From NCBI GenBank assembly GCA_946965045.2, contig OX337232.1, positions 3,534,001 to 3,598,000 of the forward strand: a stretch of 64,000 bases of DNA, given 5' to 3'. This document shows, piece after piece, positions 1,321 to 51,395 of the stretch (positions are counted from its first letter, which is position 1; every line of letters begins with the position of its first letter). The DNA comes from Epithemia pelagica. Lineage: Eukaryota > Protista > Bacillariophyta. The notes under the pieces were generated by a model. That model did not search any database. It saw only the letters and a list, made by a program, of their open reading frames with translations, and had not been told where the DNA came from. The position numbers were made by a program, and so were the translations under genes.

Positions 1321-2050
1321 GACCATCATTGCCTGGATCTCATGAGATCCATTTTTTTTGAACTGCGGGACAGTTTGCATCTTTTGGCGCCTTGTTATAC
1401 CTGCTTTCCCGCATGTTCCTACTGCTCCCATATGGAGTGCATACATGCACTTGAGGAGCGCTCGCAAGGATGTAGGAACTGAACCAAAAGAAGACGCTTG
1501 TTTAGGGTACATGACCTTAGACAAAATGACCAGCAATGCATATAATAGTAATTGTTTGATTCCAATTTGCCGCTTTGGATCGAAAGTCCTCGTGTTTAGT
1601 GTAGGAATATCACCATGTTAACAGGGTGTGGAGAGACAATCAGGACTTTTGTTCCATATCGGCCTATTATTTGTCCTCTCCTTGACCGACGGCTGGTGCC
1701 CAGTAGATAGTTTGTGTCATGAGTCATGATGTGAGTCCCGCGCCATTGTGGGCCCTGACGGGCTCGCGCACCAGAGCGAGCATCGAGAAAAGTCCCGCCA
1801 CTTTTCATCTTTTGTCCCAAAGGTTGTTCCAAAAATTCATCGAAGCATCGAAGACCGAAGCGTCCATGATATTGCCTTGATCACGACGTCTCCTGAAAGC
1901 CTTGTTAAATAGTTTTTCGAAGCATATGATGTCTGGGATGTCGAGGAGGCACGTCGAATTCTGGATGAGAATGGTGAGACCATTGCAAAAACACTTGACT
2001 GGAAAACACGCCAATATCCCCTCCATCGCATTTTAGATGAGAATCATCGC

Positions 2051-3844
2051 ATGAACTTGTCTTCTATTGAGGGATATAAACTGGTTGAGCAGTTGGTCTC
2101 ATGCTTTCCCGACGCTCTTTTGAGAAAGGACCGTTATGGCGATTTGCCCATTCATCACGCTCTCCATATTAGACCGTACTGCTCACCTACTCCCGAGAAC
2201 AAAACCTACTGTCTTGTAACTTTTTTTATGCGAGAAGAACCACGGTGTGCTGCTATCCAGTCATACAAGTGTGGATGCACGATTCTGCATAGGGCCTGCC
2301 GAGAACATCCTAAGATGGTTTCAACGTATACCATGACACAACTGGCCCAAGGATGGCCCAATGGCATTGTTCAAAAAGATGGAAATGGATACACTCCCCT
2401 TCATAATCTTTGCCAAGTATCACAGCATCGGGACGATCTTATTGAGCTTTTCAACCTGTTTCATCAGCTCCAACCAAGCTGTCTGTCCATTCCTGACAAT
2501 GAAGGGCGTAGGCCCCTCGACATGCTCTGTGAAAACAAATCTCTCGGAAATTCTTACCAAGAGCAATTGGTCAAACTTGTCCTTTCTCTTGACCCTAAAG
2601 TCACAGAATTCGTTGATAACTGGGGCAATCTTCCTGTTCACAGAGCGTCTATTTCTTGTCCAAGTATTGCTGCTTTGCTGCTTGAAACGAGTCCGAAAAC
2701 ATTAGACCTATGGAACAGAGCATTCGGTGTTCCGCTGCACTCAGCTATCCGGTATGGTAAACCCCAGAACAACACAAAGGCCATTATTCGAATGATTCAA
2801 GCTCGTCCCGATCAAGCCAAATCCCCTGACGAAAGCAGGGAAAACAAGATACTTCCTCTTCACATTGCCTGTAAACACGGAATGGCCGAACTCATTCCAA
2901 CTTTGGTTGAGGCATATCCACAAGCTCTGTCATGGCAAGACTCCAATGGAGATACACCTTTCCATTGTGCCGCCCGAACGACCAAAAATCAAGAGGTTTT
3001 GACCTGTTTGAACAACCTTTATCCTCAAGGCTTTTTGTACAAGAACCGTGACGGCCAGCTGCCGATTGCGTGTTGCGGCAAGGATCACCAGCAATTTTTG
3101 CATTTGGTGCAACTTTGTCCTGCAAGCCTGTATCACGACTCCTCGACAGATAGTACATCGCTGAATCCAGGGAGTGCGTATTTGTCCGACAACCACAAAC
3201 TGTCGGACTCGGGAGCAGTACTACTCAATCGAGTCTTTGCGGCGACCATCCCAAAGCCCACAGATATGAAAAGCGAAAATAAGAAGCCCAAAGAAATGGA
3301 TGATTCAAAAGAGAAGGAATCATCATCATCATCATCCAATCACATCAATCAAGACCTAGAAAAGGACTCTGACGACACTCATGATAAAGAAGGGGAGGAA
3401 AAAGGATCAACTGCTGGCTCGACGACTAATGAGGCAGATTTGCTGGAAAACGAAATGTTTTCTCAACCATTGCTCGACAAGGCTATCGATAGATTGCAAA
3501 GGCTGTTGCAGGAAGCGGAGGAGATGAAGAGACATTTGGTTCAAGTGCAAACGACACAAGTAGCATTGGCGCAAAACACCAACAAGAACAAGTGCGAACA
3601 ACATGACGAGGGGCAGGCACAGGAAACGGACAACACGATGCTCACAGAGGAGGCCGACCTTCGCAACACAGGACGTACTAGTGTATCTTCCGTTGGTGCT
3701 ATGCAACGGTTAGACTCGAATGAACCCCAAGGTTCCAAAGAGTGCACGAACAAAGGCATCGATACTGCAGAGCACAAAGAACAACAACCAGGATCGAAAC
3801 GAAAACGTCCCCCGAGTAGTGAAACAGAGCAAGAATGCCACTAG
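2051..3844 (+). CDS. Ankyrin-repeat protein, subfamily D (D1), with acidic linker, short coiled coil and basic C-terminus
   Basis: 597 aa ORF with repeated ankyrin-like motifs (GDLPIHHA, GYTPLHNL, GNLPVHRA, ILPLHIAC, GDTPFHCA) and C-terminal SKRKRP. The homologous N-terminus continues upstream (ESLVK*FFEAYDVWDVEEARRILDENG) but is cut by TAG 1910-1912. Confidence 0.8.
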   Translation: MNLSSIEGYKLVEQLVSCFPDALLRKDRYGDLPIHHALHIRPYCSPTPENKTYCLVTFFMREEPRCAAIQSYKCGCTILHRACREHPKMVSTYTMTQLAQGWPNGIVQKDGNGYTPLHNLCQVSQHRDDLIELFNLFHQLQPSCLSIPDNEGRRPLDMLCENKSLGNSYQEQLVKLVLSLDPKVTEFVDNWGNLPVHRASISCPSIAALLLETSPKTLDLWNRAFGVPLHSAIRYGKPQNNTKAIIRMIQARPDQAKSPDESRENKILPLHIACKHGMAELIPTLVEAYPQALSWQDSNGDTPFHCAARTTKNQEVLTCLNNLYPQGFLYKNRDGQLPIACCGKDHQQFLHLVQLCPASLYHDSSTDSTSLNPGSAYLSDNHKLSDSGAVLLNRVFAATIPKPTDMKSENKKPKEMDDSKEKESSSSSSNHINQDLEKDSDDTHDKEGEEKGSTAGSTTNEADLLENEMFSQPLLDKAIDRLQRLLQEAEEMKRHLVQVQTTQVALAQNTNKNKCEQHDEGQAQETDNTMLTEEADLRNTGRTSVSSVGAMQRLDSNEPQGSKECTNKGIDTAEHKEQQPGSKRKRPPSSETEQECH

Positions 3845-3884
3845 ATTCGGATAGTCTTTAAAACTAAGAATTCACTTATATATA

Positions 3885-4124
3885 TTTTTCGAGGCCTATG
3901 AGAACAAGGATTTGGACAAGGCACGACGAATCCTGAACGAGGACGGTGGTGCTGTCCTGGCCCATACCTTGGATTCCATCTTGCATCGATATCTCCTTCA
4001 TTGCGTTTTGGATCAAGACAAGGAGTTCTTGTCTAGCAAAAGGCTTATAAACTCAATTCCCGACTCATTCAGTTGTGTCCGAAAACGCTCTTGAAACGAG
4101 ATAGTTCTGATCGTTTGCCCCTTC
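3885..4124 (+). pseudogene. 5' fragment of a D-type ankyrin gene, truncated by the PGAM-kinase segment
   Basis: Close copy of about 8158-8397 (FEAYENKDLD..RILNE.GGAVLA.TLDS..HRYLLHCVLDQDKE). Similarity stops abruptly after ...tttgccccttc at 4124. Confidence 0.75.
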
Positions 4125-5661
4125 TCGGTTCCAACAATGTCCCTCTTGCTTTCCCTAACGCTAAAACAACGCCGAATGACTTGGAGTAATCACTGTCATC
4201 AGAGTCGTGCAACCCGTAAAGTTCGGAAGATAGAGCTGACCGTTTTTCATCATCCAACGGGCCTACAAAAGAAAGCGCCAATGTAATCTTGTCTTCGACT
4301 AGAGCCTCTTTTTGACCGTGGTGGTGCTCGCCGCCAAGAAAGTCTATCCAGAGAATATCGCCATCGCGGGTCTTGATGGCGTTGGGATACCTTGCATCTC
4401 CGTGATACCAGCCGCTATCATGCAACGCTCTGAGTGCGCAAAAAAGCTCGCGACAAGCCTCGCTGGTCTTGATCATAGTGCTCCCCACAGGTGTCATTGT
4501 ATACGCACAAAGAGGCCACTCAGCTTTCGCTTGTACTTCTACAACAGGGGCACCTTCATGTTTTGCGCTCTTCAATCTGCGATACTCCTTTGCGAATGAA
4601 GCGTGACCCGAGCGAGCAACCTTCAAAGCAACCATCTCGCCGTTCTCATTCTCGACGCAGAAAACTTCGCCGAAAGAGCCACCGCCCAAATACGCAGACG
4701 CGCCACCCGCAAGACTGGCGATCCGCAATCGCAGATCCACCATGGCATTCTGGGCGTTTACAACCTGTTGCGTCGTATGTTTTGTCATGTAGGCTTTCAA
4801 TACTGCTCTCGACCCTGGTGCATCCCATGGCACGAGATGATACAACGTGCGGATTACCCCATCGATAGAATCACCAACGACAAACCCATCCATGTCGTAC
4901 AAAATAATACTTAAACTGCGCCTCTTAACCCCCAAGCACTTCACGTAGTCGACCATCTCGCCAAGGGCCTGATGAAGATTTCCCAACTTTGATTTGCCCT
5001 CCCACAACGACGTAAGGTAGAGTTCCGAATCTCGTTTCATGTCCAAGCCGCCGAAGATCAAGCCCGAAATTTGGTGATTTGTTCGAAAACTCACCATAGC
5101 TTTACCTCCAAATGAAGTCGAAGGGGAGATCCGTAACGGGTGAGCGGTGAGCAAGTCAGGTTTCCTGCGGTTTTGAGCTGACTCAAGCGGATAGGCTGGA
5201 AGCCACTTTGTCGATTCTGTATTGCTCAAAACAAGTCCTGACTTTGTTTCTTCTTTCAACACTTCCGTAATTTTCGGGGACAAAAGAGCTGTCATCGCTG
5301 CTTCTACCAAATCAGGCTGTACCTCTCGAAGTGTTTGCCGTAGATCACACAGTTCAACGCTCGACAGTACCGACGACTCTTTGTTGGCGCCAACCATACC
5401 CGGAGGCTGTTGACTGTATTGGCCGCTAATGATCAATGCCTGTAGACATCTTGCGCCTCTTGTGGCCGCAGTTTGGGTCGGTTCGACGTTCTGTTGCTGG
5501 ATTAAGTCAGTTAAGTGTTGCGTGGCCTCAGTTAAGTAGCCCAACTGTTGTTGCGTGGCCTGGTTCTGTTGTAGCATGGCCTGGTATTGTTGCATCAACT
5601 GTTGTTGCATGGCCTGGTTTTGTTGCATCAACTGTTGTTGCATCAACTGTTGTTGCATCAT
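4069..5661 (-). CDS. Crinkler (CRN)-like PD-(D/E)XK nuclease + kinase module; could also start independently at ATG 5661
   Basis: Nuclease-like motifs [22 protein letters not shown] and ALGEMVDY. Kinase motifs [27 protein letters not shown] and WIDF. Confidence 0.7.
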
Positions 5662-6683
5662 CGTGGGAAGCTCCTCGACATGTAGAGAATTTGCGTTAGT
5701 GACAACCGGATTGGCCACCGCAACTTCTGCAGGAGGAGCAGCCGCATCGTCAGACGGTTCAGTATCGGAGACGGCCAGCTTCCTCAGCAGATCATGGGAG
5801 TTGTGGCCTCTGCGACTCTGCGTTTGGGCGGCAATGGGAGCGAAAGCTGGATGGAAGTTTTCGGTGATTTTGACACCCTCGATACGCGCTTTGATAGCAT
5901 CTTGATCACCCAAATAACGGCCCTTCAGGGGAGCAATAGCATTGGCTTGAGGGATTGGTTTGAGATTCTCGTCCAATTCATACACAAGAGGAGTCCCCGT
6001 TGGAATATTCAATTCGGCAATGGTGCCTTCATCGACGTCGTCCAAATGCTTGACAAGAGCTCGGAGTGAGTTCCCATGAGCAGCAATCAAGACAGTCTTG
6101 CCTTCCAAAATCTTGGGAGAAATTTCATTCTTCCACAGGGGAACAACCCGGTCCAAGGTTGTGGCCAACGATTCCGTCAAGTCATTGGCCGGGTGGTGTT
6201 CACTGGTTTTGTCAACGGGAGGTGGAGGAACATTATAAGCCACTGTGGGTTCCAATCCCTCTTTGGCAATCAACTGTCCCCCTTCAACCACCTCTTCGTG
6301 GCCCTTTGGCGACAAAGGACAATCATACCAACCAGTGAACTACGGAAACACAACGACGGACAGAGCAATATAAAAGTAAGAACAGAATTCCTTGATATCA
6401 TCCCCTTTATTACAACGAATCCTCCCTAAGATGAATGCTGAAGTTGTGAACACATGCCTTATTTTCAAGATTCCATGTCGATTCACCATGTCGAATGAGG
6501 ATCAGCGTGTGTTTTTCAGCAGTCTGGAACGTTGCCAAGCTGGAAGAAGATACCAAAAGTACCTGTGGTGAGATCTCACTTTCGCTGCAAGAAGAGGAAT
6601 TAAACCAAGGATTCCTCAACCTACCTTGGCAAGCTGCGTACACGAGACGCCAAGCGAAGAGAGGAACGGGAGATGGCAAACAT
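4069..6683 (-). CDS. Predicted chimeric gene of about 803 aa: presequence + internally deleted dPGM + polyQ linker + Crinkler-like restriction-endonuclease-fold domain + protein kinase
   Basis: Exons 6683-6625, 6539-6458 and 6339-4069 join in frame via a GT-AG intron (6624-6540) and a GC-AG intron (6457-6340). This gives [56 protein letters not shown]..., open to the stop at 4069. Confidence 0.55.
5520..5661 (-). repeat. Imperfect tandem repeat encoding QQQLMQQ units (polyQ-rich linker)
   Basis: Repeated caactgttgttgcat / ggcctggttctgttg units; translates as [29 protein letters not shown]. Confidence 0.85.
5869..6683 (-). pseudogene. PGAM: Cofactor-dependent phosphoglycerate mutase (gpmA/PGAM-type) copy with mitochondrial-type presequence and two in-frame internal deletions
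   Basis: Motifs [27 protein letters not shown] and [14 protein letters not shown] are present. The segment normally between VAY and (Y)xxPPP (the LxRA...LNERHYG region) is missing, as is a short stretch before TESL. No stop after ...IEGVK. Confidence 0.85.
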
Positions 6684-8146
6684 GGTGGTCGGTCAAATGA
6701 CAGCACCCCCGTCATGGGAAGCTTCCTACATCTCTCAGTACTGTTTTCAGTTTTGCTGACGTCACTGTAGCGATTAAAGTAGACGCATTAATCATCCTTA
6801 TCCGGAGCAATACGAAAAAAAACGAAAAACCCCCAACATTCTCTGGTGAAGTAGACTGGGTTTTTCTTTTTTTTTGTGGGACAACATAATATTATGGACC
6901 ATTTAATCATGAGATTATCTATAGATTTGAGTACAAAATTATATCCGCGACTGAAAAATGAGGGAAGATCCCAAAGATCTTGCGACCATGTCGGCACGGA
7001 GACGCACACTCCGGAACCAAACTTGCATCACCCATGATCTTCCACTCTCTCTCTCTCTCTCTGGTGTGATGGATGTAAGCTTTACACTGAGCAAGGACAA
7101 GCTGCTAATACTCCAGGAGACCCGCAAGGGACGAGCCAAGAAAGCCATGTGGAAGGTCTACGACGGCTTGCCTTGTCCCTGGGAGAAATGGAAGCGGCGT
7201 CAAAATTTTCCTTGTCGCATCATCGTCGACTTCCCGAGGCTATCTCCCAAGCACGGGAGCTCTTACAGGGAGGAGCTACCATGGTATGAGGGACGGCCAC
7301 CAAGTACACGTTACTGGGCTGAACGAACAAATCAAAATGACAGAAGACTTGATGAAAGGCTGTCAGTTTGTAGCGACAGGTTGTGTGTTGATTCATGAAC
7401 CATCTTTGGGATACAGTCGAGCCTTTCGACGGCACGTCAAACAAGCGAGTCGACCATTGTCGAAACCGTGATGCAATTAATGACTGCCTTTTTGGACGAC
7501 ACCCCGTCTGGTTCAAAATTCTCCCTCTCTCGAACGCATGTGGCCATAAGTACCATCAACATCAGCAAACCAGTCCTGGTCTGGGTGTATATCTTGGTTT
7601 ATTTTTGGATCCGAGTGGCGAAAAAGGGGAAACTATCATCACGCTCATCATGTTCGTCAACGCTCCAATCCAGTTCCAGTTCCTTCCTCATTGTCAGTTT
7701 CTGAACAACACAAGACGGGTTTATGAAATGAAGGTCTCTTACTTCAAAAACCGTTGAAAGCAGACAAATGCAGCGGAATGTCTGCTGAGCGATAAGAGTT
7801 TCATGTTCATTTCAGGCCCGCCAAGCAGAAACACGTCTCTTTAATTCACTCGTACTCCTTAATAATAGACCTATGGCCGCTACCCATCATGTAGAGAAAC
7901 TACTGCTCCTGAATACGGATACTGAACTCAGCCGTCCTATACCGCCTTGGCGGTTTCAATTAGGGAGCGTAAGGTAGTTCAAGTCATGCGTCGTTCATTC
8001 CCGCGCCGTTGGTCGCGCCGTTGGTCCGAACATGCGGGCTCGCGTTCAAAGATCGGGAGAAGAAAAACCTCCACAAAATTCAAACAAGGACAGGAAAATC
8101 ACACTGAGAAGAATCGCCGTTTGCCAATCTCCAATCTCGTAGTTTG

Positions 8147-8720
8147 TTCATCATGCTTTTCGAGGCCTATGAGAACAAGGATTTGGACCGGACACTACGA
8201 ATCCTGAACGAGGCCGGTGGTGCCGTCCTGGCCCAAACCTTGGATTCCACCATGCATCGATATCTCCTTCATTGCGTGTTGGATCAAGACAAGGAGTTGC
8301 TGTCTAGCAAAAAGGGTTATAAACTCATTTCCCTTCTCATCCAGTTGTGTCCAGAAGCGCTCTTGAAACGAGATGCTTCTGGTCGTTTGCCCCTTCACTA
8401 TGCCTTTTCGATTTCATTCTGTTCTTCTTCCCCTCTTCCTCCCAACAACAACAATAAAAAGGTCTTTTGTCTTGTCACGCTCATACTTCGTCATGCACCC
8501 GAGTGCGTGGGTGTCCCGTAAACGGGCCGCTTTGTATCGCACAGTTGCACCCATTTCGGTGTCGAAACCGCGGACCATCATTACCCCAAAGCAATCACCG
8601 CCTTTGCTGCCGTTGCAGCAAGTTTCATCGCCGTCCAGTCAACCATCCTTGCGCGTTGGTGAGTCCATCAAATCTCACGTCCTATCGGTATCTCAGATCA
8701 ACTTGCGTGAATTCTCGTAG
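8147..8720 (+). pseudogene. Degraded D-type ankyrin gene fragment
   Basis: ORF 8144..8521 aligns by eye to the D1 N-terminus (GYKLI..L.QLCPEALLKRD..GRLPLHYA...FCLVT), then breaks. It is followed by spacer sequence also seen near 23.5 kb and 30.1 kb. Confidence 0.7.
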
Positions 8721-9740: not shown

Positions 9741-11543
9741 TTAGTCTAACGAGACTCGCGCCCGTTTCACCCGTCGATTCTCTGGAGATTCATCCACAAC
9801 GACAGTCGACTGTGGATTCGGGTTGGCTGTTGTTGCTGTGCAACTATTGGACGGAAGTTTCACGTCCACCTTTTGTAGCTCAATATGGGTGTGCTTAATA
9901 AAGTCCGTTAAGGACGACCGAGAAGGATTCGGATTGGACAAGAAGCCTTGTACAAGGAACTCTTCCCTGGATTGTTCCTGGGAAGGCTTGTCACCATGAG
10001 ATTTGACAAGTTCGAGCCGTTTGTTCAGAAAGCTTGCAAGGGCTTTCAGAGCTTCGATTGGCAGTACGCTCAAATCGTCTTGGCCTGGAGTTTCAATGAT
10101 TGGGAGCATTGCCGCATCGAGTTTCTGTCCCTCTTTGATAATGTCTTGAACAAGCATGTCATTTCGAGTCTCTACATCTTTTAGCTTGTCAGTCAACTGT
10201 GCGTTCTCGTTCTGAACGGTCTTGAGCTTTTCGCCAGCACGTTTCAAATCTGCTTTCTCTTGCTTCAACTTTTCGTTCAAGCTTTTGTTGTCGATCGAGA
10301 GACTTTTCCAACTCTCCTCGAACTTTTCTTTTTCTCGCAAGGCGTCATCTCTTTCCCTCTTGAGTTTGGCTTCACCCTGCTCGTCCTTCCCAGAACCGCT
10401 AAGCGCTTTTTTCGTCAAGATGCATTGAAAGGCGTGATGAAACACCTGTCGCAGCAATTCCGTGCGGCGCTTGGGGAGATTGTGGTGACCAGACAAATAC
10501 TCAAGGACAGGACTGAGCAGCAGACTGTCTTGAATCTTTGTGTCATCAATATGAAACAAGCTCTCGGGGCACAATCGGGCCAGATGCAAAAACCTTTCAT
10601 CATCCTTGGGGCAACAATCTATGGGTAATTCACCGTCGTTGTTCTTTTGCAAAAAGGCTTCTGGATACTCTGAGTAGAGATACTGAAATGTGTCGGCATA
10701 GTCTTTTTCTTCGTTACTTGTGACCAAATGAGCAGGCAAGTTTCCATCATTGTCCATCACACGTACAGAATCTGGATACGCTTCTACCAAGGCCTTTATA
10801 ACGCGGGTCGGCTGGGTTTAACATGCATAATGAAGAGGTAGCATCTTCGTAGAGGATTCTTGCTTGGAAGCATGTTCGGGTCGGGCCTTGAGGAGGCACA
10901 ACACGGCATCTGGATTGGAACCATATATAGTTGTGCATGCGACATGCAACAAATACGTTCCATCATCGTCACAGATATCAATGGGTTCTTGGTATCGGTC
11001 CAAAAGCATCTCCACCAAATCTTGGTTTGCGCCCACCGCCACGTCGATTGGAAAATTTCCATTCTTGTCCCTTTGTCGAATTCCCTCTGGATACAACTCT
11101 AGCAACAAGGAAGCCACTTGCTTGCCCTCCTTTCCTAGAAATGGCTCGGCAGCTTGACGATGAATGGGAAGTTGCCCCTTACTGTTTGGTGTGGAAATGC
11201 ATTCCGGTAGTACTTTGTAAAAGAGCTCAACAAGGGTCTTGTCCCATTGGGCCCATTTGAAATGCAGGGGACGATTCCCACGAATGTCTTCTTTGAGGAG
11301 CACATCAGGATACAGGCTCAATATTTTGGAGACGAGCTTGTAGCCGTTGGGAAAGGGGAACGCGCGATAATTGAGGAGTTGATGGAGTGGGTATTGTCCA
11401 CTCGAGTGTCTGGCTTTGGCAAGGGCCACACCATGTTCGCCATTGAAGAGTTCCAGGAGCGCTTCCATTTTTTCTTCCTCCCAAAGCTTGGCATGAAGAG
11501 TTTTATGGAATGATTTGAGCAGGGAGTCTGTTGACGCGGTCAT
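9741..11543 (-). pseudogene. Ankyrin-coiled-coil gene A1 with one in-frame stop
   Basis: ATG in cccaccATGacc context at 11543 (MTASTDSLLK). ORFs 10818..11741 and 9741..10790 are the same frame, split only by TAA 10818-10820 (HYAC*TQP vs HYACKTQP in A2). Ends VDESPENRRVKRARVSLD. Confidence 0.85.
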
Positions 11544-12229
11544 GGTGGGTGACAAGAGGGGAAGTAGACAATGGCGCTCTGTTAGTTCTTTTGTGACGAT
11601 GATGAGAATGAGAGGGCATCGGCAATCGGCATCGGTGGGAATTGTCGGAGGGAAAAGTGGGAAGCGGCGCGCTCTCCAGAATCCACGCCTGCACATCACC
11701 GCTAGACCGAGCGGCAAGGTACCGCGTAAAAAGCGCGACAATGCGTGGTTGAAAGGTTCTCGTGACTGATCTACCTACCGAATGCATCCAAAGCTTGTTC
11801 GTCGGAAGAGAAAACATGGAGTATCAAACAATCAATCGAACTCGGCGAGAACGAATGTTTAACGACACACCGTAATGGTTCGATTCGAACATTTCAGACT
11901 TTGCTGTTGTACTCCAAAAAAGCCACCAGCCACTGCTCCTAGCTCGCCACATGGCTTAGAACAGGTCGGAGATTCACTTTGTTCTTGGGAGTACTCCTAC
12001 AAATGCTTCCTTTGGCCAGACGACGTCAAGGGTGAATCATCCGAAACGATATTCATCAACGAACTCCTAAGGCGTATGCTGTGCTGTCTTGTCGCTTTCC
12101 TTTGCTATTATCCATTCAAACTGAACGCGTACAGGCAGAGTCATTGAAAAGATAATATAAACACGACATGATATTCGTTTGTCCCATCGGAGTGTCTAAA
12201 GTCCCGTCATGTTTATGTGCATCGTTTCA

Positions 12230-14152: not shown

Positions 14153-14333
14153 GGTGGGAGACGAAAGGGGAAGTAGACTCTCTTGATTTCGAACTACCTT
14201 GGAGTTTATCTGGCACCGCGGTATCAACAGCAGGGGGATGAAATAAAATATCCCTCGATCTTACTTTTTCTCTCACTGACCCCGACGCCAGGGTTGCACC
14301 GCATCCATCACGATCGTAGGGTAGGTCTTGGGA

Positions 14334-18330: not shown

Positions 18331-18332
18331 AT

Positions 18333-33790: not shown

Positions 33791-33811
33791 AAAATCATTG
33801 ATATATAATTA

Positions 33812-37126: not shown

Positions 37127-37276
37127 GGTTCTGTGGATGAGAGGTGAGAAGACAGATTGGTTGTCTTCTTATCATAGCTTCGATCCGAGGTCCGAGAAGG
37201 TGCAGTAAGCTGGTTCGGCTTGCGCGCAGTTGGACTATACCACGCAGGCATATCCATTATGAATAAGAAAAAAACA

Positions 37277-37372
37277 GACGTGCTCGGATTCTTTGCTGAG
37301 TATGCGCAAACGCCGGCGGACAAATCGGACGCTCCAATGAAATGCCGCCACAATTGGAACTTTGCGGTTTGT
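37277..37372. promoter_or_regulatory. Conserved B-upstream element (copy 3)
   Basis: GACGTGCTCGGATTCTTTGCTGAGTATGCGCAAACGCCGGCGGACAAATCGGACGCTCC; between the divergent peptidase gene and B4. Confidence 0.5.
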
Positions 37373-37437
37373 TCAGAGGCGGACAGTGATAACCTTGGAG
37401 AAGGACGACGACAACAACAACAACAACTGAACAAATC

Positions 37438-37837
37438 ATGACTTATATTGAGACAAGTGAACTGTTGGACATGTTTTGGTCCTGCTTCAAATCATTTCAG
37501 TACCTTGCAACAACGATCGCAATTGGTCCAACCGCATGGTACATTCTCGAATGTCGGCAATCACGCAGACGAATCTTCAATGTTCCAGTTCATGTTGCAA
37601 ACCTTGTTGTCTATGCCCAATTCTAGTCATTCTTCCCTCCTCGAACTGATTCATCTGGAACCACTCGATCAACAGGTTGCTGGTGCTTGTAAACAAGTTC
37701 TCACTCCACCGAAAGCCACGCAAGAACATGCCATCACCACTCGAAGAGGACACCATCGATTGGAGGAAGACAACAGTGGAGATGCCTTGTCTCCCATTAC
37801 TGAACATGCGGGCTCGTGTTTCTATCTCCTAGGGTAG
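37438..37837 (+). pseudogene. B4: B3-type gene with roughly 2.1 kb internal deletion
   Basis: MTYIETSELLDMFWSCFKSFQY (B3 start) is joined directly to LQQRSQLVQP... (B-type tail), out of frame, at about 37503. Confidence 0.85.
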
Positions 37838-38189: not shown

Positions 38190-38770
38190 CGCGAAGTCCT
38201 TCATTGTTTGTTCCAGAACGAGGTTCCTCTTGATGAGCTGCTGATCGATCTCATGACCCTGTTTCATGAGCTCCAAACCGAGTGTCTGTCCATCCCAGCC
38301 GCCGAAGGAAGCACGTCCTTGCACCTTGTATGGAGTAGTGGATATTTGGGAGCAGTCTACTAAAAGTAATCGGTTCAGCTTTTACTGTCTCTGGATCCTC
38401 ACACGGCCCAAGTCACCGATTACGGTCACAATCTTGCCGCTAATTTTGCAGACATTCAAAATCCACGGTTTGTTCCACTGCTGCTCGAACCAGTCCCAAA
38501 TCCTTCAATTTATGCGACTGTGAGGACCATGTTCCCTTGCACTTAAGCCCTCCTCTGGAAGATAAAATGCAACCATCATTGACGATTGATGACGTGATGC
38601 AGATGTGGCCGACAGTGAAACCTTGTACATCGATGGAACATGAACCACAAGAATCGGGTTCAAAACTTTCGCCGAATGAAGAAGAACAAGGAAACCAACC
38701 GCCTGATTCTGCCGAGACAGTTCAGACCAAAAAAGGGCATCTCGGGATCGAAACTCGAAACCACGAACCA
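38190..38770 (+). pseudogene. Degraded D-type ankyrin fragment
   Basis: LFHELQTECLSIPAAEG...LLSLDP can be read across stops; the end resembles the D1 tail (...KRASRDRN vs GSKRKRP region). Confidence 0.6.
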
Positions 38771-40779: not shown

Positions 40780-41671
40780 GGTGGGAGACAACAGGGGCAG
40801 TGTCACCCTCTTTATGACTAATTACCTTATATGTTACTCCTACTCTGTTTCGGGTTTATCGGGAAAATATCCGTAGGTATACGTAAATGTGGCGCCCCTT
40901 CGCCAGCATCCCCAACATATGCCGAACGGACATATGACATATGCTGCCAATAGACATAGACTGCCGATCCATCATGGCGCGAAGCAATGCGTGATTCAAT
41001 TTTCTCGCGCTTGTGACTATTTTACCTACCGGGATTCTAAGTCTATCAACTGCTGCAAATGCCTCTTCGCTCGATAGATTCTACATAGCATGCATCACAC
41101 AACTGCGACAAGCAGGAGTACCTGCGTCTTGGGTCTCCTCTAGGATGATGACAAAGGTGCTACGAGAAAGGTGCTACGAGTTACGAGACACAGTACTGGT
41201 TTGATTGAGTCCCAATTGAACGTATCAAGACTTTCGCTTCGTCCCAGTCGGAGCTTTGCGCATGGCTCAAAGGTGTGATATGCAACTAGACAGTATATCC
41301 ATTCAGCTAAAGGCACAAAGGCAAATATCCTTAGTCGTTTATCAATATATTATCGAACAGTACATATAGCAATGACTGGTCTGGGATCAAGCCACTGGTG
41401 CAAGAACACTTCCAACGCGTATAAATAGATCAGTCCTTCAAAACTCAAGCCCGTTTCTTGAGGGATTCATCCATAACGACAGTCAATTGTGGATTCTCTT
41501 GTCGGCTGTTCATCTTTTGTAGCTCACGATCGGTGCTCTTGATATACTAGCTTATGAGGGACGGCCGAGACAGATTTGGACCCGCAGTCAACTTTTTCAC
41601 CTTTCATCTTAAGGACGCTATTCTTGGTCAATCTTGCCTCAAGGTTTGGATTATTGGTACCAACGATTCTC

Positions 41672-42670
41672 TCAATCATATTCTGAGAAGAAAGAATCAA
41701 CAATGTCGCCATACATGGCGCCGTTCTCTAATAGTCCGTGATGAGAACATCCCTCCAGCATCTTTTCCGGCACAAAGTTGTGATTGAAGACTCGTGCTTT
41801 CCAATCTTGCGTACACACGTCCGTCACAAAGTCGTGTTCTCCTCGCAGGACCAGTGTCGAGGGCAATCGTCGTGCCGTCTCACTGGGCGGTTGTGCCACG
41901 TAGTTGGCAATCGCCGTGGTGCCTCTCCACACGGTCCCGGCATGAGCGTAGGCGTCCACCAAGGCTTGCGGTGATTCCTCTGTTTGACATTGATGAGCTT
42001 TGCGAAATTCTTCGGCAACATTGTCTTCCTCCTTCAACTCAAGTTCCGAAATGAGTCGGTTGGCTTCTTGTTCCACTTGTGTGACATTGGTGGGAGTCGA
42101 CGAGAGAATTGCCGACAACACAATATGGTCGCCCTGGCCCGATTCAGCGTGTCGTTTCATATATTCATAGGCAAGAATCCCACCAAAGGATTGCCCATAT
42201 AAATGAAACCGTCGCAGTCCCAGCTTTTGGACCAACGTCTCCAAATCGTCCACGGCCTGGTCAATCGAATAACAACTTTCGTCTTTGGGTTCATCCGATC
42301 GGCCACATCCCAATTGATCGTAAAAGACCAGTGATCGATACTATATCACCTGTTCCAGTGGGTAGAGATAGTCCGAGGGAACCGAGGGGCCCCCGTGCAA
42401 GACAACCATGGGAGCCGCTTGTCGTGAGGACAGTGCCATGGGCCGCACAATGCGATAGGCCAGTTGGTACTCGTTCGGCGGCTCGCCGTCGCTCTCGGAA
42501 CGAAACACGGCGCAGTGTCCTTCATTGTATGCGGCACCAAGCCTAGACGACAAGAAGGAGGAGCGTTGTGCTACGAAAGCATTTTTGTTAGGAGCTAATA
42601 GAAAGGCATTGGGTGTACCCAGAAACGCGAGAGCCACGAATACAATGGCAGTATGCACTCTCACTCTCAT
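41672..42670 (-). pseudogene. Second proline iminopeptidase-like copy with one in-frame TAG
   Basis: ORFs 42341..42670 and 41672..42313 share a frame, with TAG at 42341-42343 where copy 1 has CCG (EQVI*YRSL vs EQLIPYRSL). All catalytic motifs are retained. Confidence 0.88.
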
Positions 42671-42810
42671 GGTTCTGTTGACGCTTTTGAGCTTGAGGGA
42701 TGGGAAGACAGATCGGTTCTTTTGATTTTATGAGTCAGCCCCTTCGGTCCGAGCGAAGAAAAGCTGGTTCGGTTTGCGCGCGGCGGCACTTTCCACGCAG
42801 GCATATCGGG

Positions 42811-42902
42811 TGACGTGCTCGGATTCTTGGATAAGTATTCGCAAACGCCGGCGGAGAAGTCGGACGCTCCGACGAAATGCCGCCACAATTGGAACTTTGC
42901 GG
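42811..42902. promoter_or_regulatory. Conserved B-upstream element (copy 4)
   Basis: TGACGTGCTCGGATTCTTGGATAAGTATTCGCAAACGCCGGCGGAGAAGTCGGACGCTCC. Confidence 0.5.
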
Positions 42903-42981
42903 CTCTCATTGTTTACCCTCTGGAGTTGGAGAAGGACGAAGTCGAAGAAGGGCGAAGACAACAACAACAACTGAACAAATC

Positions 42982-45489
42982 ATGACGTACATTGAGACAA
43001 GTAAATTGTTGGACATGTTTTGGTCCTGCTTCAAATCATATCAGTATCAAAACACGCTTGGACTGGTCTCAAGCGAACATGGCTACAAAATTGCCGGGGC
43101 TCAAGATTCCACCACCAAGCAATACACGATGCATCGCATCCTGGATTCTCCACCGCAATGGTGGATTAATCATCCTCGCAACTTTTACAAAGTCTTGTCC
43201 GCATTGGTCGAGAAGACTCCTGTGTATGTGTTTCAAACCAAGGATAAGGAGGGAAAGCTTCCTCTGCATTATAGTCTCACCCTCCGCCACGAGATGTTCA
43301 AAAAAGAAGAGTGCATCATGGCGTTGGTACTGAAGAAGAGCCCGCGTGCTGCATGGTCCAAAACAAACGACGGAGAGTATCCCTTGCATGTCGCCTGCAG
43401 TTCCTCTGGGTTCCGTACTGACATGATCTGTGAACTGGTTGACCGCTATCCCCAGGCGATTATGCGATTGGATAAAAGCGGCAGACTTCCCATTCATAAC
43501 TTGTGCTCTCGTACTAGCAGCGTTCTCGACAGCGTCAAGGTGATTGAACAATTTTTCAAATTGGAGCCCAACTGTGTTTGCTCGGAAGATGCCAAGAGGC
43601 AGATACCCCTTCACATGGCGTGTTGGGGTAGCAAAGACAGGCAATTGGTGTCTCTGCTAATAAAGCTGTTTCCTCAAGGAGTCAAAAAGAAGGATGATTC
43701 TGGGAATTTACCCATTCATCTTGCCGCTTCGTCTTGTCCAAAACTGGTTCCAATTCTTCTCAAGAGTTTTCCCGAGTCGATTGACATTCCCACTCGCGAG
43801 CGGAGGCATGCCCTGCACCTTGCGTGCCGCTACAGTCCTAGCAGCTTCAATGATAATGACTACCACAAAGGAATTGTCGAACTTATCAAGGCTGGTCCTC
43901 AACATGCTTCCACGCCCTATCAGTCGTCCAAGATGCTTCCTTTGCACCAGGTCTGTGCCAATGGTCTGTCGATGGAGGTGGTGAAAGCCTTGGTGGAAGC
44001 GTATCCCGATGCCGTCAAGATCCCAGACGCCAATGGAGATTTGCCCGCTCATCATGTCGTGCGTTCGTCTAGACATCGCCTCGATGTCGTGCGGTATCTT
44101 CATGCCTTGTACCCGCAAGGGTTTTGGCACCCCAATCACAGTAATCAACGACCCATTTCGTTGTGTCCTCACCAGAATGACCGACTCTTTATCACACTGT
44201 CCAAATTAGCACCACAAACTCTGTACAATGACACGGCACGAAAAAATGATGATAAAGTTCCTCTCGCTCCCCTCATTCAATATATGACGACTCATCACAG
44301 ATTACCTGCAAGCCAAGCCGACTTGATGCGACAAGTCTTTTCTTGTGCCATACAGCCGTGGCCGAGTCATGACACCACGGAGGAAGATGAGGAAAAGGAG
44401 GAGGAAGAAGAGGAAATGGAAAAGCAAAAGGAAGAGGGTACGCGAGAGCACAAGCAAGAGGCTAAGGAAGAGGAAAAGGAAATGGAAGTGGACATGCAAG
44501 AGCACAAGGAGGAGGGCAAGCAAGAAGCTAAGGAAGAGGACTCGCAAGAGGCTAAGGAAGACCGCAAGGAGGAGGGTAATGAAGAAGACAAAGAAAAGCA
44601 CAAGAAGGACGAGAAGGAAGGGGACAAGGAAGAGCACAAAGAAGAACACAAGGAGGAGAACGAAAAGGCAACAATGGACCAGCAAACCCAAGATATGAAA
44701 AAGAAGTATCAGGATCTCGAACAAGCCTACTCTGCGTTACTGGATATCAACAACAAATTGACGCAGGAAAAGAAGCAACTCCAAGACACGCTGGAGGTTC
44801 AACTCACGCAAGAAAAAGAGTCGAAAGAAAAGGATAAAGAGCTCCATCAGACACTGGAGCATTCCCAAGCCGAGGTGTTGCATCTGCAGAACAAGGTACA
44901 GAGCTTGGAGGAGGAACTCAAAACATCAGAGTGTGCACACAAAAATACCCTGGAAGATCAAGAAGGGATCCGTTCCCTGTATGGGAGAATTATTGCCCAA
45001 GGACGATTGTGGGATCAGCATTTGATAGGCCTTTTGAAAAAGCACTGTGATCCAAATGACGGAACAACAAGTTCGACAGTGCCCACCACTGAGATTTTCA
45101 AAGCCTTGGCTGTTTCCTTGCAAAAACGATCGCAATTGGTCCAACCGAATACCGGAAAAGACGCAGACGAATCATCAATGTTCCAGTTCATGTTGCAAAC
45201 CTTGTTGTCACAGCCCAGTTTGAGTCATTCTTCCCTTCTTGAATTGATTCATCGGTTGGACCGTCAATTGGAACCACTCGATCAACAGATTGCTAGCGCT
45301 TGCAAACGAGTTCTCACTACACCGACATGCACCCAACAAGATGCCACCTCCACCCAAAAAAGAAGCCATCGATTGGAAGACGACAACAGTGGAGAGGCCT
45401 TGTCTCCCATTACCTTGGATGAAACATTGACTTCCATTGATCATGGGAGCCGAGGACCAAACAAGCGTGCTAGAGTTTCCATTTCCTAG
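42982..45489 (+). CDS. Ankyrin-coiled-coil protein B3 (intact, 835 aa)
   Basis: Start MTYIETSKLL. Many ankyrin motifs (KLPLHYS, EYPLHVAC, RLPIHNL, QIPLHMAC, NLPIHLA, MLPLHQVC); E/K-rich linker; coiled coil; LLSQPSLSHSSLLELIHRLD...GPNKRARVSIS. Confidence 0.9.
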   Translation: MTYIETSKLLDMFWSCFKSYQYQNTLGLVSSEHGYKIAGAQDSTTKQYTMHRILDSPPQWWINHPRNFYKVLSALVEKTPVYVFQTKDKEGKLPLHYSLTLRHEMFKKEECIMALVLKKSPRAAWSKTNDGEYPLHVACSSSGFRTDMICELVDRYPQAIMRLDKSGRLPIHNLCSRTSSVLDSVKVIEQFFKLEPNCVCSEDAKRQIPLHMACWGSKDRQLVSLLIKLFPQGVKKKDDSGNLPIHLAASSCPKLVPILLKSFPESIDIPTRERRHALHLACRYSPSSFNDNDYHKGIVELIKAGPQHASTPYQSSKMLPLHQVCANGLSMEVVKALVEAYPDAVKIPDANGDLPAHHVVRSSRHRLDVVRYLHALYPQGFWHPNHSNQRPISLCPHQNDRLFITLSKLAPQTLYNDTARKNDDKVPLAPLIQYMTTHHRLPASQADLMRQVFSCAIQPWPSHDTTEEDEEKEEEEEEMEKQKEEGTREHKQEAKEEEKEMEVDMQEHKEEGKQEAKEEDSQEAKEDRKEEGNEEDKEKHKKDEKEGDKEEHKEEHKEENEKATMDQQTQDMKKKYQDLEQAYSALLDINNKLTQEKKQLQDTLEVQLTQEKESKEKDKELHQTLEHSQAEVLHLQNKVQSLEEELKTSECAHKNTLEDQEGIRSLYGRIIAQGRLWDQHLIGLLKKHCDPNDGTTSSTVPTTEIFKALAVSLQKRSQLVQPNTGKDADESSMFQFMLQTLLSQPSLSHSSLLELIHRLDRQLEPLDQQIASACKRVLTTPTCTQQDATSTQKRSHRLEDDNSGEALSPITLDETLTSIDHGSRGPNKRARVSIS

Positions 45490-45960: not shown

Positions 45961-47686
45961 TCATTCCGAATCCAATGAAACTCGGGGCCGCTTCTGACGT
46001 CGCGTTTCTGGTGGTGAGTCATCCACTGCAATGACCACGGTGGACTGCTGAGATTCTTCTGGATCCGTTCCTACGCGGCTCGTGCTACCGTGATAAAGGG
46101 ATTCAGCGGTAGTTGTCGTAGGACACGGGCGAGGGCTCTGGTCTACAAGACGAGCCGCAGCATCCATTTGGCCATCGGCCCAGTGAGGGAACTGGATCAA
46201 GGAGTACCAGCTCCGATTGGGATTCGCCAAGAACTCATCGAGAAACTGAACAATAAACGGCTTTTCGGTTGTTTTGGATCGGTGTGACTCAATCAGTTCC
46301 AGTCGTTTTTGCAACGAGACGGCAAAGACTTTCATGACCTCCATGGACAATGGGTTCGTCGTATGAGTGTTGTCCTGATGGGTCTTGTCGTCGAGAATGG
46401 AAATGAGCAACTTGTCGAACCTTCGACCTTCCTGGACCATTGAACCTACTACGGCCAAGTTCTCACCAGCCTTAGTTACCGCCTCTAACTGTTCTTCGAG
46501 TTGCCTCTTTTCTTGATCTTTTGCTTCCAGTTGCTTTTTGGAATCGTCTTCGAGGGCCTTGTGCGCCTTTTTGACGTCGTCGATTTTCTTTTTCAACTTG
46601 GCGTTATCGCTTTGAACCTTGTTTAGATTTCGGAGCTCTCGCTTACTCTCGGTTTTGGTCTTTGTATAATCACACTCAAGTTTCTCCTTTTCGTCTCGAA
46701 TCTTGTGCAGCTCCCGTTTCAAAAATTTGTACTCTTTCTGGACCACGTCCAATGCTACGCGATCTCGTTCGGTCTTTCGAGTCTGGCTGTTCAAACCTTC
46801 TATCAACTTTTGATTTTCCGTTCGGAAAGCCTCCTTCTCTTCTTGAAGCTGATCCAAGAGTGCTTGCTTTTCCTTTAAATTGAGATTTTCTGTTCGGAGA
46901 GCCTCCTTCTCTTCTTGAAGCTGATCCAAAAGTGCCTGTTTTTCCTTTAAATTGAGATTTTCTGTTCGGAGAGCCTCCTTCTCTTCTTGAAGCTGATCCA
47001 AAAGTGCCTGTTTTTCCTTCAAATTGTGATTTTCCGTTCGGAGAGCCTCCTTCTCTTCTTGGAGCTGATCCAAAAGTGCCTGTTTTTCCTTCAAATTGTG
47101 AATTTTTCGTTCGGAGATCATCCTGCTCTTCGTGGAGCTGATCCAAAAGTGCTTGCTTTTCCTTCAAGTTGTGATTTTCCGTTCGGAGAGTTTCCTTCTC
47201 TTCTTGGAGCTGACCCCAAAGTGCGTGTTTTTCATGCAGTGCTGCTTGAGTACACAAAAGGGCAGATTTCCGGGTATCTACCTCTAGTGAATATCTACAA
47301 AACAGTTCAATTGGAAGATGATTGTCGTTGGTAGGAACATGAAAGCACTCTGGTCGCAACTTCGACATGCAGTGAAAAATCAACGTTGGTTTAGCGTGTG
47401 CGTTGATACGGTCGCAAACATAATGAATTGGTAAATTACCACGCATATCCTTGTACATGAGAGCGTCGGGGAAGAGATTCATCAACTCGATCAGGAGGCA
47501 ATGAGAAGTGGGCAGACGAAAAAAATAAGCAGCTAGTTCTCTCAAAATCCAATGAAGTGGATAAGATTGTTGTCCGATGCATGTTTTGGCAATCTCTTCC
47601 TCGTGATTACCGCGCAACAGTTCTCGGGCCTTGTCCAGATGACTAGCTCTGAGTTTTTTCTAAAACGAGTCGATTGCGGACGCCAT
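45961..47686 (-). pseudogene. Ankyrin-coiled-coil gene C1 (TAG at codon 9, +1 frameshift near 47105)
   Basis: MASAIDSF*KKL (TAG 47660-47662; Tyr in C2); SYPLHWIL, NLPIHYVC. The frame shifts inside the repeat array. Ends VDDSPPETRRQKRPRVSLDSE. Confidence 0.82.
46820..47250 (-). repeat. 72-bp tandem repeat (about 6 units) encoding a 24-aa coiled-coil unit LKEKQALLDQLQEEKEALRTENHN
   Basis: The ctgatcc anchor recurs at 46849, 46921, 46993, 47065, 47138 and 47210 (last as ctgaccc); spacing is 72 except one of 73. Confidence 0.9.
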
Positions 47687-48305: not shown

Positions 48306-49043
48306 GTGTCCTTTCCCCATGATATCAAAAGTTCCTCGTGGTGTAGAAGCAGAGGCGCCATTGCGTTGTGTCTTTCGCTGGCCGCGCTTCTTCACAAGAA
48401 ATCAGATTTGTCCATCTTCCATCGGACCCTGGCGACCAGCGCTGTCTCTCCCTCCCCCGAAGAAGACTCGAATGCAACACCCGGTGAGGTAATTTCAGGT
48501 GATGTCTCTTCGTCTTTGGTCGGCAGCAGTCCAGAATCACCAGGAATGCTGGCGTTGGTGAAACAATATCTGGATGCAGGAAGTCGTAGCTACCAGCTTC
48601 AAGCACCGCGAGAGGATCGGAGCCAAGTCATTTCACTAAACTTAACTGGAAATAATTCGTCTTTCCGGAGCTTTATTGATGTAAAAGTCAACCAAAATCG
48701 CATGTTTGTGTTCCTTGAATCACCAGTAAAGGTTCCAGAAAACAGTCGCTCGTCGTGTGCAGAACTTTTGATGCGAATCAACTACACTTTGGCATTGGGT
48801 AACTTTGAATTGGATTTCAGCGACGGAGAAGTGAGATACCGGATGGCAGTGGATGTGGAAGGATCCGCCTTGTCATTGGAAATGATTGAAACAAATATTA
48901 TGGTCTCGGTCGCCGCCATGGATCGATACTTCCCGGCCATTATGAGAGTGATGTATGGGAACAAACCGCCGCAGCAAGCCTTTGAAGAAATTCGGGTCAC
49001 GATGGCCAATGCCTCTACGAGCGGACCCGCCTCAACTCAGTAA
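48306..49043 (+). CDS. YbjN-domain (type III secretion chaperone-like fold) protein; start uncertain
   Basis: VKVPENSRSSCAELLMRINYTLALGNFELDFSDGEVRYR...MDRYFPAIMRV matches the YbjN family pattern as I know it. Confidence 0.75.
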   Translation: MSFPHDIKSSSWCRSRGAIALCLSLAALLHKKSDLSIFHRTLATSAVSPSPEEDSNATPGEVISGDVSSSLVGSSPESPGMLALVKQYLDAGSRSYQLQAPREDRSQVISLNLTGNNSSFRSFIDVKVNQNRMFVFLESPVKVPENSRSSCAELLMRINYTLALGNFELDFSDGEVRYRMAVDVEGSALSLEMIETNIMVSVAAMDRYFPAIMRVMYGNKPPQQAFEEIRVTMANASTSGPASTQ

Positions 49044-49570
49044 CTCACGGAAACGAGGACTGCAAGAGATGAAGGAAACCATTGATCAATCATGGAACAT
49101 AGGACAATGCGAAAATTCAAAATCTACAACGTCAACAAACGCAACAACTCGGACAGACGCTCCTGGTTGGTAAATTACAACACCAGCTCAATTGTTTATT
49201 AAAAGCATGTATTTCAGACAATCTCGTGTCCCTCCACAGAATCCAAATCTCATTCTCGATGATAGACTCGACACACGTCCATCACAATCCTGTGCTTGCC
49301 GTGAAACTCTTTTCGACACCATCCTCTGGAGTTTGCAGGTCGCAGTGTATCCAAACATCAAATACAGTAGCCGATAGTGTGAGATCCTCAGGGAACTGAT
49401 AGATCATCCTTGATGACTGTTGCAAATGGATACGGTGAGGGATGATACCAAAAAATAAACTTGAGAGGAAAACCAGTTCGAATTCAAAATGTCCAGAAAC
49501 CAAACACTGTTTCGAACATGTGCCTTTCGAGAAAACACTCCATTGCCAAGAAGAAATCGCATATGGCACG

Positions 49571-51395
49571 TCCTAGGTTGGGGAATGAGGAACAAGCATC
49601 TATAATATGTGGCGCATTGTCTTCGAACGTGAACAAACAGTCCCAGCACTGGTCGAGTTTTGGAAAAGAAGAGCGAAACGCATGTCCTCTCTCACAGTCA
49701 TGAACGGGTAAAGGACTAAGGCATGGAATAGGCTGATTTTGACCGCATCGCGTTCTCTCACGCATGTTCGCTCGCTATCGTTTCCATCTCGTGGACGACG
49801 ATCCTCCACCCGCAAAATCTCACATCACCCGGGTTCTCGTGTCGGCCGCCCAAAAGTGGGCACAAACTTAATGACGAATCGAATCGAAAGGAATCCTTTC
49901 CAGAGCACCCTTTCTAGGAATATGTACGAAATTGCAACATAGACTAATGAAGAACAATGTCCCCCTAACGCGATTCAAACTATGTAACAGCAATACTTAG
50001 CTACATGGTTTCCCTTTTTCGCTTGACGATATGATAGTGTTGGTCCATTGACACTCGGGTCCGCTTATGACGTCTCGTTTTTCGTTAAGTGAAACATTCA
50101 CTGTAATGAGGGACTGCGGAGATTCTTCTGGCTCTGTTCCTACGCGGCTCGTGCTACCATGGTGTTAGGAATCAGCGGTAGTTGTCGACGACAAGGAGCA
50201 GCATCCATTTGGCCATTGGCCCAGTGAAGGAACTGGATCAAGGAGGACCAACTCTGTTCTTGCGGCTGGTTCAATTTTGAAGATCTAGGACAGACTCCCT
50301 GTAGTAGCAGTTGAATTGGTAGCTGATTTGCGTTTGTAGGAACATGAAAGCATTCTGGTCGCAGCGTCGACATGCATTGAGCAATCAACAGCATTGGTTT
50401 CGTGAGTGCCCTGATACGGGTGCAAACATAATGAATTGGCAAATAACCATGCATATCCTTTTGCATGAGAGCGTCGGGGAAGCGATTCATCAACTCAATC
50501 AGTAGGCAATCAGAATTGTGCAGACAAAAAAAAGAATTATCTCGTTCTCTCAAAATCCAATGGAGTGGATAGGATTGTGGTCCGGTGCATGTTTTGGCAA
50601 TCTTTTCCCCGTCATTACCGCGCAACAGATCTCTGGCCTCTTCCAGATGACAAGTTTTGACTTTTTTGTAAAAGAAGTCGATTGCAGACGCCATGATGGT
50701 GAAGGAACAAACCCAACAACAACGAGAGAATGGTAGGATCGAGTGTTGTGCTTGGAGTGAGAATCGCATTTCTGGGAACGTGAGACCAGCATTCCGGCCG
50801 GCGTTGGCGGGTATTCCTCTCGCGCGCAAAATCCAATAAATGCACAATCTTTCACATAGTATTTTTGCTTCGATCGATCCGGCCGACTACATAAGAGGGA
50901 TTCAAACTTTCCCACAAAATCAGAATCCGAGTTCATGACATGTGATGACATGTGGTCTTTGAAGGAGCACATATGGTTCTCGATCATATCTCTTCTTTCT
51001 GGAGCATGGTGTAGATGGTAGATGCGTTGAAATGGAATGCTGTCACAAAGTCTCTTTTGCGTCGATCACAGGGAGGAATCGCAAGTGTCACAAATGGACG
51101 GCGGCGAACATAGGTACTCCTAGGTAGTTCCATGTGTGCGATGGAGTTCCTCTCAAGTGGGAAATTCGACGGAAAAGAACGAAGAAACCGCAAATAATCT
51201 CTCTCATCATCATTCATTACATGAAATCCAAGCCTCGTTGCTGACATGACCTGGTTTCTCATCTTTGCCAGAACAGCATGAAGCCCCTTCACTCCGTGTT
51301 GTGGTAAAACTGAGATGCTTGTAACCAACCAGTCAGTGGCATGTGTCCTTTCCCCATGATATCGAAAGTTCCTTTTGGTGTGGAAGCAGAGGTAC
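49571..51395. repeat. Segmental duplicate of about 45484-48355 (B3 3' flank + C gene + C upstream block)
   Basis: Begins tcctaggttggggaatgaggaacaagcatcta (the B3 stop context). Ends after atgtgtcctttccccatgatatc.aaagttcct..tggtgt.gaagcagagg. Confidence 0.85.
50050..50694 (-). pseudogene. C2: C-type gene with most of the coiled coil deleted
   Basis: MASAIDFFYKK...SYPLHWIL...YLPIHYVC is joined to QSWSSLIQFLHWANGQMDAA; the tail is degraded. Confidence 0.82.

Follow-up and report, generated by a model that had tools for sequence, protein, structure and literature searches.

We observed that a 64,000-nt window of the genome of the diatom Epithemia pelagica (contig OX337232.1, positions 3,534,001 to 3,598,000; positions below are counted from the start of this window) contains an array, at 1880-51400, of about 18 loci of a single ankyrin gene family. 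The best explanation, which we consider probable, is a lineage-specific tandem expansion that took place through gene birth and death in a region rich in transposons and whose products are dimeric, probably nuclear ankyrin adaptors. We base it on the architecture of the proteins, the spread of the family outside this genome, the history of the copies and the selection regime. Nuclear location, dimerisation and an adaptor role would follow from the parts of which the proteins are built.

Members were located with a listing of open reading frames (ORFs), Pfam, tblastn of the intact proteins, a frame map and a hidden Markov model (HMM) of the C-terminal module searched against all six translated frames. 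This bore out the first-pass annotation, which had described an array of intronless gene copies and fragments with just four intact frames. The family loci lie between 1880 and 50900 and comprise intronless genes, pseudogenes and fragments. Exactly four are intact, each with one open frame (D1, A2, A6 and B3), and six others, nearly full-length, carry between one and three lesions (A1, A3, A5, B1, B2 and C1). The fragments are three D pieces, the A tail, two A remnants, a B fragment and C2. The loci are as follows.

2051-3844, plus strand: D1, intact, 597 aa; ankyrin repeats, CPASL linker, acidic/Ser-rich stretch, short helix and KRKRP basic patch.
8108-8518, plus strand: D-type fragment a, corresponding to the N-terminal portion of D1.
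9744-11774, minus strand: A1, full-length, with one in-frame TAA at 10818-10820 where A2 and A3 have AAA (Lys).
12230-14227, minus strand: A2, intact; the likely ATG at 14152 gives 640 aa.
18336-20150, minus strand: A3, with two in-frame TAA; long ankyrin form.
20804-23420, plus strand: B1, with one TAA at 22179-22181 (AAA in B2) and an N-terminal frame change near 21090.
23567-24052, plus strand: D-type fragment b (tblastn, frame map).
25403-26119, minus strand: A tail, which retains the end of the coiled coil and the whole C-terminal module and ends in KRPRVS; 86% DNA identity to A2.
27493-29764, plus strand: B2, which has lost 1 nt from a GGG run near 28606 and has an N-terminal frame change.
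30442-32265, minus strand: A5, with two in-frame stops (TAA, TGA) and no frameshift.
35944-36066, minus strand: A remnant, a 41-aa piece of an A-type C-terminal module (HMM).
37342-37834, plus strand: B fragment, the B N-terminal leader fused to part of the B C-terminal module.
38199-38520, plus strand: D-type fragment c (tblastn, frame map).
39160-40806, minus strand: A6, intact; the likely ATG at 40779 gives 539 aa.
41451-41600, minus strand: A-tail remnant, adjoining a shortened hydrolase copy.
42877-45489, plus strand: B3, intact, 870-aa ORF; the database gene model has 835 aa and starts at 42982.
45961-47680, minus strand: C1, with a short ankyrin part, a complete C-terminal module and one frameshift within the coiled-coil repeat.
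50093-50886, minus strand: C2, a C-type fragment whose N-terminal part is directly fused to a tail piece.

The proteins share one order of parts: N-terminal ankyrin repeats, a conserved CP(E/K/A)SL linker, a coiled coil of variable length, a helical C-terminal module of ~135 aa and a KRARVS end. Ankyrin matches above the Pfam gathering score were found in the intact copies and in most of the broken copies tested, with Ank_2 (PF12796) scoring 33-70 bits (cut-off 27.3) in D1, A1, A2, A3, A6, B1 and B3. Within subfamily A the number of ankyrin repeats varies through an indel of 106 aa; A1 is of the long form, with ~106 extra residues, and so is A3, whose C-terminal end (the last ~35 residues including KRARVS) is gone. 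The coiled coil was described in the first-pass annotation as varying in length by repeat number, and it does so through internal repeats. That of A2 is the longest and contains such repeats, and that of C1 consists of a 72-nt tandem repeat in six copies (46803-47233). By the module HMM, D1 has no C-terminal module. Since it does have the ankyrin part and the linker, we treat D as a sister group and not as a full member of the family.

Two further features of individual copies were observed. The ankyrin region of B1 carries a GAT/GAG hexamer expansion (21864-21961, ~16 copies) that encodes an Asp/Glu/Asn run and is absent from B2 and B3. The A tail adjoins an unrelated 378-aa ORF in another frame (26125-27261), and 25403-27261 on the minus strand is a possible chimeric gene.

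We modelled full-length A6 with AlphaFold from 17 aligned family members (mean predicted local distance difference test score, pLDDT, 76.6). Residues 1-245 form the ankyrin solenoid (pLDDT ~90) and residues 248-421 one helix; three more helices and, at 502-539, a disordered tail complete the model. Foldseek returned 372 PDB matches to the A6 model at E <= 0.001, and those listed at the top are ankyrin domains (KANK, SHANK3, gankyrin). The C-terminal module modelled alone adopts a four-helix arrangement (pLDDT 72). Neither Foldseek nor VIA-align nor a sequence profile found a specific PDB relative for it, and only generic helical bundles were returned; the best VIA-align Z score, 9.6, is in the chance range for helical bundles. 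No Pfam model matches the module. Its alignments contain the motifs LP.E.LKA.A.SL..R and FL..PNLSRSSL.

The conservation of the C-terminal module that the first-pass annotation described held across 13 copies of this genome and seven outside sequences. In the same set, the K, R and R of the KRxRVS end are at least 90% conserved. The end is preceded by a disordered Ser/Thr/acidic stretch, and K-R-x-R-V/I-S lies within 10 residues of the C-terminus in 12 of the 13 copies of this genome and in almost every outside sequence that is complete. The pattern K-(K/R)-x-(K/R) is the classical monopartite nuclear import signal, and we take AKRARVSLD to resemble the c-Myc signal PAAKRVKLD. The KRARVS end is therefore probably a nuclear import signal, which is a fair reading of the sequence. 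The proteins had been called nuclear-targeted beforehand; the conserved basic end fits that description, and a nuclear location would follow from it.

Taken part by part, this architecture suggests how the proteins may work. The ankyrin solenoid would offer a partner-binding surface, capped by the CP(E/K/A)SL linker, and the coiled-coil helix would pair the proteins into dimers. The basic C-terminal patch would allow entry into the nucleus. Such a protein could act as an adaptor that holds ankyrin-bound partners to whatever the C-terminal module binds.

Next, we determined the distribution of the family. In the host genome (60.5 Mb, 23 contigs) the C-terminal module occurs 14 times, a lower bound at the sensitivity of the search: 10 times in the window, three times in a second cluster and once on contig 13. 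Altogether the family has at least 22 loci in this genome, which also contains a few relatives with ankyrin repeats and linker but without the module. The second cluster (subfamily E) lies ~70 kb downstream of the window on the same contig (3667315-3674320) and consists of three same-strand open genes. Their ORFs have 415, 533 and 697 codons, the longest of which may lack a true start. A fourth, nearly identical E-type copy on contig 13 (175003-176500) is intact and has 510 codons.

Word-based searches of 5.8 billion proteins matched this genome's own proteins only. The whole-protein word search was swamped by coiled-coil words and searches with single regions gave own proteins only, so that a profile search was needed; with the ankyrin part of A6 alone, a word search gave the own copies and just three unrelated generic stramenopile ankyrin proteins. 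A profile of the module against 1.84 billion representative proteins gave 28 matches, 11 from this genome and 17 from outside. The outside matches have E values of 1e-12 to 1e-3 against the whole library of 1.84e9 proteins, and the complete sequences among them share the part order of the array proteins down to the KRARVS end. The sole named outside match is the "Ankyrin Repeat" protein Sro89_g046780 of Seminavis robusta (CAB9500658.1, 677 aa); the others come from metagenomes and read-archive assemblies. Sro89_g046780 and the ~16 unnamed environmental clusters resemble the array proteins in part order, in a CP(E/A)SL linker, in a C-terminal helical module with the motifs LK.FA.SLK.R and F(I/L)..P..S(R/K)(S/T)SL and in a KRAR(V/I)S end, and the Seminavis gene is intronless. 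Its module identity is, however, only ~22-26%, and the protein has no described function. No second ankyrin gene was found within 8-10 kb on either side of the homologue in the Seminavis contig or in an 11-kb environmental contig. A metagenome contig scan with the alignment of the outside group gave no matches, and the single JGI contig read for an outside homologue has no poly-A tail at its end.

A maximum-likelihood tree of the module separates the 14 copies of this genome from the outside sequences by a branch with 99/99 support. Because all 14 tested copies group together, the array is a lineage-specific expansion. Subfamilies A, B and E are each monophyletic in this tree, in agreement with the subfamily structure proposed at first for A and B and with an extra group elsewhere in the genome. 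We found no paper describing this family. Together with the missing Pfam model for its C-terminal module, this agrees with the earlier suggestion of an undescribed family in diatoms.

We then reconstructed the duplication history by self-blastn. DNA identity between paralogues is 65-88% and every matching pair has the same orientation; dS among copies is 0.1-0.85, with B1 and B2 at ~0.1. Given this level of identity and the shared orientation, the duplications are old and direct. Collapsed repeats or another assembly artefact were rejected, as the copies differ by 12-35% in DNA. Two pairs of larger co-copied blocks were seen, 35792-37502 with 41285-43046 and 20793-23431 with 27301-29787, and 20737-20902 also matches 37213-37377. 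The recurring block consists of an A gene on the minus strand, an a/b-hydrolase and a B gene on the plus strand, and the two hydrolase copies are listed here.

36140-37126, minus strand: a/b-hydrolase (S33-like) inside the duplicated A-B block, with a signal-peptide-like N-terminus.
41672-42313, minus strand: shortened a/b-hydrolase, the second copy in the duplicated block.

Co-duplication of such blocks accounts for the recurring order of D fragment, A (minus) and B (plus), and the higher-order arrangement noted in the first-pass annotation is visible in self-blastn as the A/hydrolase/B block. A simple block model fails in places: the A tail is closest to A2, yet its neighbour B2 is closest to B1.

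The broken copies indicate when genes were lost. About 4% of random substitutions in family genes would create a stop, and we took half the dS to the nearest paralogue as the period of drift. Under neutral drift ~23 stops would be expected in A1, ~23 in A3, ~10 in A5 and ~5 in B1, compared to the 1, 2, 2 and 1 observed. The broken copies thus carry 5-20 times fewer stops than the neutral prediction, and the neutral period of these four copies amounts to just ~0.01-0.03 substitutions per site. This deficit indicates that selection maintained the copies through most of their existence and that their inactivation is recent. Older casualties survive as fragments only. This is true birth and death, as the first-pass annotation had supposed, in a real array with clear subfamilies; it counts against junk and does not require conflict.

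Introns were rejected as the cause of the breaks: in the alignment of paralogues, every premature stop stands in the place of a sense codon, with no inserted sequence. Of the six premature stops, four (at 10818-10820, 19830-19832, 31474-31476 and 22179-22181) are TAA in place of a lysine codon, AAA, in the closest paralogues. The same A-to-T change occurring four times independently has P ~0.01-0.02 under a simple model, calculated post hoc. An alternative code in which TAA is read as lysine was rejected, because TAA also terminates A6, A1 and A5 at the conserved C-terminus.

To quantify selection, we calculated omega, the ratio of nonsynonymous (dN) to synonymous (dS) divergence, by the Nei-Gojobori method on codon alignments of five A and three B sequences, with the following results.

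Subfamily A omega: ankyrin part 0.29-0.64, coiled coil 0.34-1.17, C-terminal module 0.28-0.59.
Subfamily B omega: ankyrin part 0.35-0.47, coiled coil 0.17-0.34, C-terminal module 0.38-0.71.

The ankyrin regions had been thought to diverge more than the C-terminal module. This is not what we observed: in subfamily A, ankyrin dN (0.15-0.26) is not above that of the tail (0.15-0.32). For B1 or B2 against B3, ankyrin dN is higher (0.29-0.30 vs 0.12), but ankyrin dS is higher as well (0.64-0.69 vs 0.28-0.31), and for this reason the ankyrin omega of B is the same. A mosaic history or gene conversion in the 3' half of the B genes is the simpler reading. Between A2 and A6, both intact, omega is 0.50 overall and 0.34-0.41 in the ankyrin part and tail. 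In 40-codon sliding windows, omega is clearly above 1 in two regions only, the leader that precedes the likely start codon and the repeat part of the coiled coil, whose alignment is uncertain. Values of 1.0-1.35 are found in a few ankyrin windows, all of them from comparisons with the pseudogene A5. Neither the pairwise nor the sliding-window omega of A and B gave any sign of a hypervariable sensor. Values below 1 show that the copies were under purifying selection, so the array is not junk, and the neutral ratio throughout that junk duplication would leave was not found.

In conclusion, we favor a lineage-specific expansion of ankyrin adaptors in which the copies were long maintained by selection, through most of their history, with several recently inactivated and older ones reduced to fragments. 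Some observations weigh against it. Omega in the youngest pairs, at 0.5-0.7, is fairly relaxed. The basic end may be another kind of C-terminal motif. The role of the C-terminal module is a guess, since no structural relative is informative.

One alternative, compatible with this explanation, names a process for the proteins: a cell-division or cell-wall-associated ankyrin family, equivalent or related to Siren2 of Seminavis robusta. Siren2 is an ankyrin-repeat family specific to pennate diatoms, without a signal peptide and possibly acting in late mitosis; in Seminavis it is expressed at night and lowered by silicon depletion (bioRxiv 10.1101/2020.11.23.393678). Siren3, an a/b-hydrolase-fold family with a signal peptide, is reported to be co-expressed with Siren2 in Seminavis (bioRxiv 10.1101/2020.11.23.393678). 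The hydrolase at 36140-37126, which starts with a signal-peptide-like sequence and belongs to the duplicated ankyrin block, recalls this pairing, and the only named outside homologue comes from Seminavis. However, ankyrin repeats and hydrolases are both common, which makes the coincidence weak, and we consider the identification unlikely. The soluble ankyrin proteins dAnk1-3 of Thalassiosira pseudonana (Tp23225, Tp5147 and Tp21058) are located at the silica deposition vesicle, on its cytosolic side (PMC9894196). By description, dAnk1-3 and Siren2 resemble the array proteins as diatom-restricted, soluble ankyrin-repeat proteins without a signal peptide, but the papers mention no coiled coil, conserved C-terminal module or basic C-terminal end.

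A second alternative is decaying junk, in which a dispensable gene has piled up by segmental duplication in a transposon-rich region and no copy is now under selection. Over half of the loci are broken or fragmentary, omega rises to the relaxed values given above in the youngest pairs, and two mobile elements lie within the array.

14373-17496, minus strand: reverse-transcriptase element between A2 and A3, with a 941-aa RVT_1 ORF; not a family member.
32378-35131, no strand assigned: Harbinger/PIF-type transposon, with a DDE_Tnp_4 transposase (32378-33790, plus strand) and a second ORF (33812-35131, minus strand).

The retroelement has a strong G-over-C skew (+0.33). The second ORF of the Harbinger element (439 aa) is convergent to the transposase and has no Pfam match; the element lies just upstream of the start of A5. 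Against decay, four genes here and at least four elsewhere in the genome have open frames of 415-870 codons, omega between the intact A2 and A6 is well below 1, and the architecture is kept in other diatoms. With the 5-20-fold deficit of stops in the broken copies since duplication, these observations make junk very unlikely.

The first-pass annotation favored a conflict system (innate immunity, self/non-self recognition or toxin-antidote drive), with the ankyrin region as a fast sensor, the coiled coil as an oligomerising stalk and the tail as a constant signalling end. Head-to-head A and B genes would then be sensor-helper pairs. High turnover (four intact copies, six lightly broken, about eight fragments), an A (minus)/B (plus) pair that recurs three to four times, variable ankyrin repeat number with the indel in subfamily A, and expansion in this lineage only would all suit such a system. 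The variable sensor and constant tail were not recovered, as ankyrin omega is below 1 in all pairs and the same as in the tail. Pfam detected no NB-ARC or NACHT domain in ten family proteins at E <= 0.1, and no nuclease, toxin, pore-forming or death-type domain. The family proteins and ten other scanned window ORFs are likewise without a toxin, nuclease or pore domain by Pfam, which unknown folds could escape. Block duplication accounts for the recurring A/B pairing, the second cluster of this genome is a plain same-strand tandem, and the outside homologue has no neighboring paralogue in the two contigs with usable flanks (>=8 kb). We therefore give this explanation little credence. A narrower form, a self/non-self or anti-parasite system in which A/B heteromeric nuclear coiled-coil complexes recognise foreign or allelic proteins through their ankyrin faces while null and intact alleles segregate, seems to us highly improbable.

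We also compared the array with better-known protein families. The animal proteins KANK1-3 likewise combine an ankyrin domain with long coiled coils, and KANK ankyrin domains are the top structural matches, but the ankyrin domain is C-terminal in KANK and N-terminal here. ANKRD26/POTE is a lineage-specific multicopy family of ankyrin and coiled-coil proteins in animals. Neither KANK nor ANKRD26/POTE has a sequence relationship to the array beyond the ankyrin fold, and both are without the diatom C-terminal module. The NLR/STAND receptors, with ankyrin, TPR or WD40 sensor repeats, are similar in being clustered, high-turnover genes with potentially ligand-binding repeats; the array proteins differ from them in lacking both a nucleotide-binding and an effector domain, and their repeats are not hypervariable. 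Most likely the array belongs to a known kind, the clustered lineage-specific ankyrin gene families, but with a new C-terminal domain. No finding here indicates a new kind of system.

Two other genes were observed in the window. A 245-aa ORF at 48306-49043 (plus strand) has a YbjN domain (PF10722), whose family bears the name of a putative sensory transduction regulator of bacteria; the ORF lies in a diatom nuclear contig and its 5' flank is duplicated along with C1/C2. A 748-aa ORF at 4069-6315 (minus strand) combines a histidine-phosphatase (phosphoglycerate-mutase-like) C-terminal part, a Gln-rich repeat and a kinase-like C-terminal region; His_Phos_1 scores below the cut-off and Pfam makes no other clear call.

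The array defines a small undescribed diatom protein family, for whose C-terminal domain there is neither a Pfam model nor a structural relative. The family is rare outside, with 17 clusters among 1.84 billion proteins, and has expanded in one genome to at least 22 loci. It thereby provides a clean, datable case of gene-family birth and death. If the proteins have a nuclear role in the division or sexual stages of pennate diatoms, the family would offer a handle on lineage-specific nuclear biology.

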